DNA of 62,989 nucleotides, counting the filler, from Olpidium bornovanus S191 (Eukaryota > Fungi > Olpidiomycota): assembly GCA_017911155.1 (NCBI GenBank). It is 30 parts of 30 records of this genome, joined end to end, with 100 filler letters (N's around TTAATTAATTAA, not from the genome) between each part and the next. Parts side by side here need not be neighbours in the genome. Positions count along the whole stretch, not along the records: positions 16,388 to 18,576 come from JAEFCI010003172.1; 29 more parts are not named here. One strand, 5' to 3'. The translations under genes were made by a program, and so were the position numbers. The notes beneath the pieces are model-generated. The model was not told the DNA's origin. It was given only the letters and a program-made list of their open reading frames with translations, and did not search any database. Positions within the stretch are counted from its first letter, which is position 1. Each line of letters begins with the position of its first letter. This document shows positions 16,388 to 19,232 of this stretch, one piece after another.

Positions 16388-16462
16388 CGGCGGCGAGCGC
16401 GCAGCGGCGGCAAGCGCGCAGCGGCGGCGAGCACGCAGCGGCGGCGAGCGCGCAGCGGCGGC
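16388..16462. repeat. 17-bp tandem repeat, about 4.4 copies
   Basis: Unit CGGCGGCGAGCGCGCAG with single substitutions, at the contig edge. Confidence 0.85.
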
Positions 16463-17541
16463 GGCACAGATGATGGCGCCTGCGGCGGCGGGCGCGCAGC
16501 GGCGGGGGGGGGGGGGGGGGGCGGGGGGCGGGTGGGGGGGGGGGGGCGGGGGGGGGGGGGGGGTGGGGAGCGGGGGGCGGCGGAGTGGGGCCAGCTGTCA
16601 AATCAAATTGAACCGTCCTCCTGTATTTATGCCCACCCCGCCCCTCCCATTTCGCCCCCCGCCTTTTCCTCCCCGGCTACATATCCTCGGGAAAACCGGG
16701 TGATCCCCGCCGAGGTGGCCCACCTGCGTAACAAACGAAAGAACCAATTAAAAACAAAAACGGAATTAAACAAACGAAAAAAAAAGTCGACTGCGAAATC
16801 AAACCGCCGCGGGGCAAGCTTGTTTCGCGAACGTGCCCTCGGTTGTCAGAAAGACGGGCTTTTTACCTTCAAATGCGGAACCCCCCCACCCCCTCCCTCC
16901 CCCCGCACAGTTAAACCAAAAAAAAGAAAGGGACCGCGTCTACTTTTCGGTCTTGAGGGGGGCGCGGCCCGCCAACCCGCCCGGCCGCCGCCACGACTGC
17001 GGCCCGGCGCGCGCACCGGAGACGCGACCTTGGGTCTGTTCTGCTGCGCTCACAAGTTCCGGCACAGACGTGAAATCTCGGGGTTCGGACCTCCCGAAAA
17101 CGGCGGTCGGCGTTGGTTTCTCGTTTTTTTTTTTTTTTTTCCTTTTTTTTTCGTTTTTTTTTTTTTTTTTTTTTTTTCCGGCATGCGGGTATCGGGTCCG
17201 ACAGCTGGGCCAAACCTCCCCCACACAGCTGCGCAACGAAAAAAAACGTTCGCCAAAAAGTATAACGTCCGCGACCAGGTACTTTTCTGCCATCTACATG
17301 TGGCATCTTCGGCGTCTGCGGCAATGGGATCCCCGTCACCAGGAAGGGAAGGAAAGGACCTCCATGTAAGGGGGCGGTTCGGGGCGGACCTGGCTTGCTG
17401 CCAACAAACTCAGCCGACAATCAAGCGGCCGGGCATTCGATCCAAGGGCGGCGCAACCTTTCGTATGCACTGTTCGGCGGCGAGCGCAGACCTTGGTGCC
17501 GGCGCGAAACAGACGCCGCCGAAAGGGACCGAGCCCGCTGT

Positions 17542-18458
17542 TCAGGCGCACTCCCCTTCCGCGACGACGCACTCGCCTGTTTTCGGCGAAGCAGAGTCGG
17601 AGGGGCGAGCGGGCAAAGAGGGGGAAGAGGTGGAAGGGAGAAAGTGGTTGCAGCGATGAGAGGGCGAGATTGTTTTTTTTTTCTTCCTATTTTCCTTTCG
17701 TCGCATCGTCCCTGTCCTCCCCTCCTCTCTCTCTCCCACATCACTCACCGGCCGCCTCGGCTGCGCACCTGTTGCCGTAGGTCCGCCCCGTTTCCCCGCA
17801 CACCGGCCGAAACTCCAGCGTGCAGCGGACGGACTGCGGACCTTCACACGCGGTGTTCAGCGGCTCGCTGGCGTTCGACGGCACGTCGATGCTGCGCGCC
17901 GGGTCCGCCCCGGCCATGGCCGCCTCGCACGCGTTGCGAAAGACCGCGCCGCTCGTGGCGCACACGGGCCTGAACCCCATCGCCTGGCACTCCCTCCTCC
18001 CGCAGCAGTTGCCCGCGACGAGCGGCAGGAGTTCGATGCTGCTGTTGTCGGCCGCGGCGCGCATCGCGTAGCACAGGTTTGAGTAGCTCTTGAGGGGGGG
18101 GGGGGATCGGGGAGGGAGGTTGGATGGGAGGGAGAGGAGGGAAGAGGGGGATATGGGTGGGGGGGGGCGGGCAAGGACCGGGCCAGTTGGTGAGGGAAAA
18201 TGAGGGACGGGCGGCCGGGGCGTCAGCACCTTAACGAAACTTTCTTTTTTTCTTTTTTTCCTGCGGGGCGCGGCCCCCCCATCGACCACACAATCCCCCG
18301 ACCACCGCCTTTCTGAAGTTCGCGCACTAACTTGCCTGCCCGTTGCCCGCGCAAACCGGAGAGTAGATGTCTTTGCACGCCCACGTTCCGTCGCATCCGG
18401 CGGCGGACGACGCGAGCGTCAGCAGGAAAAGCGCGGTGGCCGGATCGAAGTTTCTCAT
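17542..18458 (-). CDS. secreted three-domain Kazal-type serine protease inhibitor
   Basis: Exons 18458-18336, 18088-17749 and 17576-17542 (first intron GC-AG). Signal peptide MRNFDPATALFLLTLASSAAG is followed by ACKDIYSPVCAGNGQSYSNLC, ECQAMGFRPVCATSGAVFRNAC and RCTLEFRPVCGETGRTYGNRC...VVAEGECA*, each fitting the Kazal consensus C-x7-PVCG-x4-TY-x-N-x-C...G-x-C. Confidence 0.9.
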
Positions 18459-19232
18459 GGCAGCGTGCTTTATACCTTGCAGCGCTTTCTTCGTTCTTCA
18501 GCGATGTGACGGTTGAGCTTCGCAGACTGGGGGAAAGGGCGTTCTTTGGCGGGGGCGGGGTTGTCAAGAGGGGGAANNNNNNNNNNNNNNNNNNNNNNNN
18601 NNNNNNNNNNNNNNNNNNNNTTAATTAATTAANNNNNNNNNNNNNNNNNNNNNNNNNNNNNNNNNNNNNNNNNNNNCATGTATCGCGCTTCGTGCGCAAT
18701 TGTTGACCGTACCGAGCGGAAGGACACGAGTGACGCGGTACCCGGCAACGACGAACCGCTCGATAAATTCGGCGGGGGTGTACGTCGCGACCGTGGAGCA
18801 TGGACGATGCGAGGGCCTCCCGAGCATGGCGGAGCGGAAAAGGGGCGCGCGGAGGGGAGCTCGGAAGACGAAGAGGGGCGGAGGCGGAAGAGGAGGTTGT
18901 TAAGTGGCGCCCAGCGCCCTTGGGATAATACCTACTTGGGTTGGGATGGAAAGGTTCCTGAAGTTCAGTTTCCGGAATCTCGGGTTTTATATTTTATACA
19001 TTGCATCTTTTATTTTGTATTTTGTATTTTGCATAAAATTTTTTTTGTATTCTACGGGTGGCGTAGAGCAGCAGGCTAGCGCCCCAAGTACGAGCTCGGC
19101 GCTTTACAGCGGGACGCCCTGGTTGTCTCGCTGCCCTCGCCGTCCCACTCGGTGCCCAGACCACCCCGCCTCCCTTCGACCCCAGCGTCGTCTTCGCCCT
19201 TCGCCCCGAGGCGCCACGCACACAATCCTCCA

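Follow-up and report, generated by a model that had tools for sequence, protein, structure and literature searches.

A spliced gene for a putative secreted triple-Kazal protease inhibitor on a contig deposited as Olpidium bornovanus

The window studied here is a 62,989-nucleotide stretch of DNA, made of 30 joined parts from Olpidium bornovanus S191, assembly GCA_017911155.1. All positions count along this window unless another contig is named. One part, at positions 16388-18576, is the whole of contig JAEFCI010003172.1 (2189 bp), deposited as sequence of this cucurbit root parasite. We find that the contig carries a real three-exon gene, on the minus strand from 18458 to 17542, encoding a small protein with a predicted signal peptide and three short, non-classical Kazal domains. 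We consider it likely that the product is a canonical, tight-binding inhibitor of serine proteases. The protein family is an ordinary one, and we know of no earlier description of it from this group of fungi. Olpidium, which vectors plant viruses and lives inside roots as an unculturable parasite, occupies a pivotal point of fungal evolution. We know of no secreted Olpidium protein whose function has been studied.

Results

The triple-Kazal gene has three exons and an uncommon GC-AG intron

A prior inspection of the DNA without database searches, which we call the sequence-only reading, had placed a secreted triple-Kazal inhibitor at 17542-18458. These positions proved to be the stop and start codons of the minus-strand gene. 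The gene structure was reconstructed as a splice model. All pairs of GT or GC donors and AG acceptors were enumerated and scored by alignment to an orthologous protein, P0034, which is described below. The chosen junctions were top-scoring (366). The next best scored 353 and the deposited gene model 154. The resulting coding sequence (CDS) specifies 165 amino acids (aa) and has a GC content of 69%, rising to 89% at third codon positions.

Exon 1 (18458-18336, minus strand, as for all features of the gene given below) encodes aa 1-41. It runs from the start codon through the signal-peptide-like N-terminus into Kazal domain 1, whose reactive loop it includes. The ATG is the first in-frame start past an upstream stop. 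In tblastn comparisons, P0034 residues 39-53 match 18380-18336, and this match ends at the exon 1 donor site. Intron 1 (18335-18089) is a 247 nt GC-AG intron in phase 0, with the junctions CAG/GCAAGT and CAAG/AGC, the latter preceded by a pyrimidine tract. Exon 2 (18088-17749) encodes aa 42-154 and the first base of codon 155. This completes domain 1, covers the whole of domain 2 and brings in most of domain 3. P0034 residues 53-176 match 18091-17744 over this exon (tblastn, E 3e-37). Intron 2 (17748-17577) is a 172 nt GT-AG intron in phase 1, with the junctions G/GTGAGT and AAAACAG/GC. Exon 3 (17576-17542) encodes aa 155-165 (G-ECVVAEGECA, followed by TGA) and supplies Cys157 and Cys164, which complete domain 3. 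Its acceptor was the best-scoring of those enumerated. The P0034 sequence GDCVEHEGPCS aligned with 17577-17545, and the last cysteine lies 1 or 2 residues before the stop in both proteins.

The GC-AG choice for intron 1 is the sole pair that keeps the C3-x10-C4 spacing of Kazal domains (C1 to C6 denote the Kazal cysteines in order). A GT-AG alternative for this intron (first base 18327, last base 18087) is in frame and yields a protein of 167 aa. It was rejected; it has a score of 353, a poor donor and a C3-x12-C4 spacing. Thus, the gene model, including its uncommon GC-AG intron, is well supported by the best P0034 score, by three collinear tblastn matches that end at splice sites and by the invariant C3-x10-C4 spacing. 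Apart from its GC, the intron 1 donor (18089-18335) is a perfect consensus. Both introns are C/T-rich, with CCCT-like runs on the coding strand.

Three Kazal domains follow a predicted signal peptide

The 165-aa protein matches two Pfam families of Kazal-type inhibitor domains (PF00050 and PF07648; MEROPS I1), each in three stretches: Kazal_1 (2.5e-14; 53.4 bits, gathering cut-off 21) and Kazal_2 (4.3e-12; 46.4 bits, gathering cut-off 22.8). These matches are far beyond chance. Sequence matches in the PDB were to ovomucoids, horseshoe-crab SPI-1, Galleria silk inhibitor 2, LDTI, rhodniin and infestin. An AlphaFold model had a mean predicted local distance difference test (pLDDT) score of 76.6, with values above 90 in the core of domain 3. 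The predicted fold of each domain is strand-strand-helix-strand. Foldseek matches to the model were Kazal proteins only, and the best single-domain superpositions, with a root-mean-square deviation (rmsd) of 0.7-1.7 Å, were on short non-classical inhibitors. They included 4hgu (template modelling (TM) score 0.87, rmsd 1.3 Å) and 1an1 (TM 0.91); 2kmo and 2erw were also matched.

The predicted signal peptide (18396-18458) comprises aa 1-21, MRNFDPATALFLLTLASSAAG. Its hydrophobic core, residues 7-19, has a Kyte-Doolittle value of about 2.2, is modelled as a helix by AlphaFold and is followed by SSAAG. From this hydrophobic stretch and the SSAAG sequence we infer that the N-terminus is a signal peptide, probably cleaved after Ala20 or Gly21. 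The orthologue P0034 likewise opens with a hydrophobic leader. The protein contains two N-glycosylation sequons, at N56 and N113, and is probably N-glycosylated. The architecture first proposed, a signal peptide plus three Kazal domains, therefore holds: Pfam finds three stretches above cut-off, and the leader is signal-like by hydrophobicity, as a prediction.

A cysteine spacing seen only in this protein and its orthologue

The Kazal core motif C-x7-C-x6-Y-x3-C is exact in domain 1 (C28, C36, Y43 and C47, with N45) and in domain 3 (C130, C138, Y145 and C149, with N147). The core of domain 2 is a variant, with an x8 loop, Phe91 in place of the Tyr, and N93. An Asn at P15' is thus found in all three domains.

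Domain 1 (18002-18395, including intron 1) spans aa 22-70 and has cysteines at 22, 28, 36, 47, 69 and 70, in the arrangement C28-x7-C36-x6-Y43-x3-C47. It ends in a Cys-Cys doublet, residues 69 and 70, which is kept in P0034. We compared the framework with 1137 Kazal cores from 311 proteins. A Cys-Cys junction like that of domains 1 and 2 was not seen in other cores of this set. Domain 2 (17849-18001; aa 71-121) is atypical: it has C75, C84 and a fourth cysteine, C95, and no fifth or sixth. Domain 3 (17548-17848, including intron 2) spans aa 122-164, with cysteines at 122, 130, 138, 149, 157 and 164. Its best Pfam stretch is 122-150, and pLDDT is 90-95 across residues 131-165. The fifth cysteine is shifted to +8 (C157) and the first, C122, is at -8 from C2. 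The resulting C4-x7-C5-x6-C6 spacing occurred in this protein and P0034 only. Going by the conservation of both residues, we propose that C122 and C157 may form a disulfide bond.

Classical Kazal domains have six cysteines, bonded 1-5, 2-4 and 3-6. Domain 3 has six cysteines and domain 2 only C2, C3 and C4, while domain 1 has six if its doublet represents the fifth and sixth. The cysteine normally found 3-4 residues past the N-x-C cysteine is missing from all three domains, as the sequence-only reading had stated. The classical fifth position is vacant throughout, but the fifth cysteine is not wholly absent, since domain 3 has C157 at +8. The protein has 15 cysteines, so one must be unpaired, either free or in an intermolecular bond; Cys84 (17960-17962), Cys22 and Cys70 are the candidates. 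The Ser112 codon (17876-17878), within an N-A-S sequon, stands where P0034 has the sixth cysteine of domain 2. A single-base error was considered as the cause of this Ser/Cys difference and does not explain it.

Reactive loops and predicted P1 residues

The P1 register was taken from an alignment with turkey ovomucoid domain 3 (OMTKY3), in which the loops ctleyrplcg (OMTKY3) and ctlefrpvcg (domain 3) correspond residue for residue. The near-identity of these loops had been pointed out in the sequence-only reading. The predicted P1 of domain 3 is Leu132 (codon at 17816-17818), in the loop C-T-L-E-F-R-P-V-C-G. Seven of the 12 consensus contact positions are identical to those of OMTKY3 (P3, P2, P1, P1', P3', P14' and P15'), and P2' has Phe for Tyr. 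In the same register, the predicted P1 of domain 1 is Asp30 (codon at 18369-18371), in the loop C-K-D-I-Y-S-P-V-C. The earlier assignments of Asp (CKDIY) and Leu (CTLEF) are therefore correct in the ovomucoid register.

The loop of domain 2 is one residue longer (C75-QAMGFRPV-C84, that is, C75-x8-C84). Its P1 is Ala77 if counted forward from C75, or Met78 if counted back from the conserved F/Y-R-P-V/I-C; the two candidate codons occupy 17978-17983. The one-residue insertion noted earlier thus stands, and the P1 Ala given with it is one of two registers. The Met-Gly of this loop is kept in the orthologue (CGSMGYRPIC).

A single orthologue keeps the scaffold and differs at P1

In an exhaustive protein search, P0034 (186 aa) matched residues 27-165 in one stretch (E 5e-34). 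Its gene is an uninterrupted open reading frame (ORF) at 347-907 of a 982-bp contig (L002) from sequencing run SRR11108978, with no other gene there. Full-length alignment gave 48% identity, leader and stop position included. P0034 has 16 cysteines and six N-glycosylation sequons, and its GC content is ~50% (by eye) compared with 69% for the Olpidium CDS. Identity between the cores of corresponding domains 1, 2 and 3 was 54, 63 and 54%, respectively, compared with 33-46% for non-corresponding domains. Hence, the three domains are positional orthologues, and domain 2 is the most conserved core. The P1 residues of domains 1 and 3 differ: Asp30 corresponds to Leu in the orthologue, and Leu132 to Glu. 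In these two sequences the scaffold appears to be kept while contact residues change, as is known of Kazal inhibitors; Kazal contact residues are hypervariable (PMC1236909).

P0034 was the sole orthologue in word-indexed and exhaustive protein searches and in a JGI metagenome scan. Kazal loci from the JGI metagenomes were 30-32% identical to the query. One of these (L003 3647-4720, Ga0207675_100003116) was rejected as an orthologue; it is a high-GC, intronless, bacterial-type ORF of 357 aa with another architecture. This ORF contains three repeats of a Cys-rich module plus a Kazal domain of PVCGCD type. A broad profile search returned mostly unnamed multi-Kazal proteins, and the few with names were from bacterial metagenome-assembled genomes (Polyangiaceae, Phycisphaerae), which is uninformative on fungi. 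The top match of the exhaustive search, P0017, is a 1233 aa protein on a 597-kb ENA contig, with ~22 near-identical tandem Kazal repeats joined by PAPPQSAQSPAKAK linkers.

At the level of single domains, the best identities to domains 1 and 3 were to bacterial and green-algal Kazal domains (53-69% over 31-47 residues). With only ~40 residues per domain, and with bacterial and algal sequences about equally close, we infer no direction of descent or transfer.

A zoosporic fungus with Kazal proteins

KAJ3112814.1 (P0050; L006 8989-9978, JADGJI010000243.1), from the chytrid Phlyctochytrium bullatum, has 329 aa, six Kazal domains and a signal-type N-terminus. The gene lies on a 42-kb contig, and its neighbours have introns. 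An open literature search found no paper tying Kazal proteins to chytrids or other zoosporic fungi, and an older review statement on the range of Kazal proteins lists animals, apicomplexans, oomycetes and one bacterium (PMC1236909). The earlier remark that these inhibitors are little described in fungi thus agrees with the literature searched on zoosporic fungi, where none was found. P. bullatum shows that they are not absent from fungi.

The deposited annotation and the rest of the contig

The deposited gene (16940-18062, minus strand; L001 513-1637) encodes the 148-aa protein KAG5461758.1 (P0001; UniRef A0A8H7ZY94). We rejected this model. It begins at the internal Met50, and leaves domain 3 after TYGNR for a distant low-complexity exon (~16940-17098) encoding 49 residues without homology. 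The signal peptide is absent from the deposited protein, as are most of domain 1 and cysteines 149, 157 and 164 of domain 3. The public record is therefore truncated and chimeric; anyone relying on it sees no signal peptide and only parts of domains 1 and 3.

No second gene was found on the contig: long ORFs on both strands are of low complexity and gave no Pfam match above threshold. Rfam gave only sub-threshold miRNA-like matches, within a G-rich tract, and bacterial-type promoters and terminators did not exceed expectation. At the contig end (16388-16591), a 17-nt unit, CGGCGGCGAGCGCGCAG, is repeated in tandem 4.5 times, and a ~74-nt G run of ~80% purity comes next. A T run of ~54 nt (17117-17178) lies 365 nt downstream of the triple-Kazal stop codon. 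The end repeat, G run and T run may be the cause of the assembly break.

Discussion

A protease inhibitor is the favoured reading

We favour the view that the triple-Kazal protein is a secreted inhibitor. An exposed, disulfide-braced loop would occupy the active site of a protease in a substrate-like manner, its P1 side chain seated within the S1 pocket. Domain 3, with Leu132, would be the strongest candidate, acting against subtilisin-, chymotrypsin- or elastase-like enzymes with a hydrophobic P1 preference. Domain 1, with Asp30, would be suited to Asp-accepting subtilases. Domain 2, with its long loop and no sixth cysteine, may inhibit more weakly or with another specificity, or may serve chiefly as a spacer.

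Some considerations weigh against this view. Asp is a poor P1 residue for most model serine proteases, as seen in the OMTKY3 P1 variant series, and follistatin and agrin, for example, contain Kazal-like modules that do not inhibit proteases. The odd cysteine count and the incomplete domain 2 may mean that the protein is degenerating in part or is bonded between molecules. Model confidence is low in the N-terminal segment of domain 3 that bears C122 (pLDDT < 50 at residues 124-127). Finally, the 2.2-kb contig was placed in Olpidium by tetranucleotide binning, and the sample was not axenic (PMC7865070).

Host-directed or self-protective roles

Two more specific roles have to be weighed. In the first, which is compatible with inhibition, the protein would be a counter-defence effector, as the sequence-only reading had proposed. 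It would be secreted into or onto cucurbit root cells and would block P69-like or phytaspase-like, Asp-accepting subtilases there, by analogy with EPI1 and EPI10 of oomycetes. We hold this only tentatively. The thallus of Olpidium lies inside the host cytoplasm, a reducing environment that is less suited than the apoplast to a disulfide-dependent inhibitor. The source organism is an obligate root endoparasite (PMC7865070), and the protein is small, Cys-rich and of predicted secretory type. The P1 Asp of domain 1 is shared with the Phytophthora infestans inhibitor domain EPI1a, where this residue has been modelled within the S1 pocket of the tomato subtilase P69B (PMC10533508), an enzyme that cleaves after Asp (PMC7382257). 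However, this Asp is not conserved, being Leu in the sole orthologue, and the cysteine pattern is unlike that of EPI1a (PMC1236909). Differences in reactive-site residues between the orthologues are what host-driven diversification would give. Conversely, the gene is single-copy, with no paralogue family detected in the deposited proteome, whereas oomycete effector families are expanded.

In the second role, the inhibitor would not be directed at the host. It might shield zoospores, which have no wall, or sporangia against microbial proteases present in soil water, or it might regulate subtilases that the fungus itself secretes, for example during zoospore release. This, too, is possible but somewhat doubtful. 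The loop of domain 3 is near that of the broad-spectrum OMTKY3 and would suit microbial subtilisins and chymotrypsin-like enzymes. In structure, the nearest match is an inhibitor from Galleria silk (4hgu), to which a role in guarding silk from microbial proteases is ascribed. The DNA and RNA behind the assembly came from zoospores (PMC7865070). Furthermore, P. bullatum is a saprotroph and has a multi-Kazal protein that is predicted to be secreted, so Kazal proteins of zoosporic fungi need not mean parasitism. However, the chytrid protein belongs to another Kazal subtype (C4-x6-C5) and is no orthologue.

Origin of the contig

The contig could come from another eukaryote on cucumber roots (an oomycete, alga or protist), in which case the fungal Kazal protein would be a binning artefact. 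We think this improbable. The assembly derives from non-axenic zoospore washings of cucumber roots and is a metagenome bin, kept by tetranucleotide composition and then a similarity filter (PMC7865070). The contig is short, with one gene and no phylogenetic marker; the nearest domain-level neighbours are bacterial and green-algal, and the sole orthologue comes from run SRR11108978. Set against this, the authors of the assembly call their binning conservative, with 16% of the raw assembly kept. The two spliceosomal introns exclude a bacterial origin. In addition, P. bullatum, another zoosporic fungus, encodes Kazal proteins, so a fungal origin of the Olpidium contig is not anomalous.

It is very unlikely that the domains are non-inhibitory binding or adhesion modules in the style of follistatin, agrin or SPARC, or that the gene is decaying: the odd cysteine count, the lost sixth cysteine of domain 2, the follistatins among the whole-model Foldseek matches and the conservation of domain 2 (63%), unlike the hypervariable loops of active inhibitors, would fit this, but the reading frame is intact over three exons with consensus splice sites, none of the 12 contact positions of domain 3 is at odds with inhibition, and the follistatin matches (TM 0.13-0.15 on the target) reflect multi-domain length, whereas single-domain inhibitors superpose at 0.7-1.7 Å.

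Significance

The corrected triple-Kazal model is an easily testable candidate, since the protein is small, its domains can be expressed separately and protease assays are standard. Its cysteine arrangement, specific to the family, modestly widens the known variety of non-classical Kazal domains. A bolder proposal is that this is the first Kazal inhibitor of host proteases from a true fungus. Here, the scaffold would have been recruited independently, with its own cysteine framework of a shifted C1-C5 pair and a Cys-Cys domain junction and with a long-loop middle domain, against Asp-accepting, P69-like or phytaspase-like root subtilases (domain 1) and proteases with a hydrophobic P1 preference (domain 3), converging with the oomycete EPI proteins. 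By analogy this is conceivable, though we rate it as unlikely. If true, it would give a first molecular handle on how a virus-vectoring Olpidium keeps host cells alive. A Kazal inhibitor of Olpidium would also put one more kingdom among those known to employ Kazal scaffolds at the interface with plants. The finding would be routine should the contig prove to be a contaminant or the protein serve a housekeeping role.

Comparison with known Kazal systems

KAJ3112814.1 of P. bullatum is 37% identical to the Olpidium protein over residues 28-154. It differs in being encoded without introns, and in having six near-identical domains of the pattern C-x3-C-x7-C-x10-C-x6-C-x14-C (the C4-x6-C5-x14-C6 type). 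It lacks both the Cys-Cys junction and a long-loop domain 2.

OMTKY3 (PDB 1CHO, 1PPF, 3SGB, 1YU6), an animal egg-white protein, is like domain 3 in its P1 Leu and in having C1 placed 7 residues before C2. Unlike domain 3, it has the classical fifth cysteine three residues after C4, and C4 and C6 are 20 rather than 14 residues apart. Superposition of the two is moderate (rmsd about 5 Å, 48 columns). The Galleria mellonella silk protease inhibitor 2 (2M5X, 4HGU) aligns end to end with residues 128-164 of domain 3 (E 6e-6). The short Kazal fold is also shared by the non-classical inhibitors LDTI (1AN1/1LDT/2KMO), infestin (2ERW/2F3C), rhodniin (1TBQ) and SPI-1 (3QTL), and LDTI superposes at a TM score of 0.78-0.91. 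In these short animal inhibitors, as in the Olpidium protein, the classical C1-C5 pair is missing or displaced, but the displaced cysteines are at other positions.

Short Kazal domains of bacteria and green algae (for example, from Sandaracinaceae, Chelativorans, Polyangiaceae and Edaphochlamys debaryana) lack the classical fifth cysteine and have C6 at +15. They differ from the Olpidium protein in their architectures and have no shifted C1-C5 pair.

EPI1 and EPI10 of P. infestans resemble the Olpidium protein in being secreted multi-Kazal proteins (by prediction in our case) of a plant parasite, with a P1 Asp domain and atypical cysteines, although the two belong to different kingdoms. EPI1a, with P1 Asp, inhibits subtilisin A and P69B (PMC1236909; PMC10533508), so the sequence-only reading was right about EPI1-type effectors and plant subtilases. 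It had also left open a relation to the oomycete proteins; a specific one is not indicated by the published cysteine pattern. EPI1a lacks Cys3 and Cys6 (PMC1236909), whereas domains 1 and 3 of the Olpidium protein keep both, with the classical Cys5 absent or shifted. Domain 2 lacks Cys6 but retains Cys3, so the two-disulfide framework of EPI1a is not found here. A P1 Asp is present in domain 1 (Asp30 in the ovomucoid register, behind a signal-like N-terminus), a position occupied by Leu in the orthologue. A Kazal domain short of disulfides can remain a stable inhibitor, as EPI1a does (PMC1236909).

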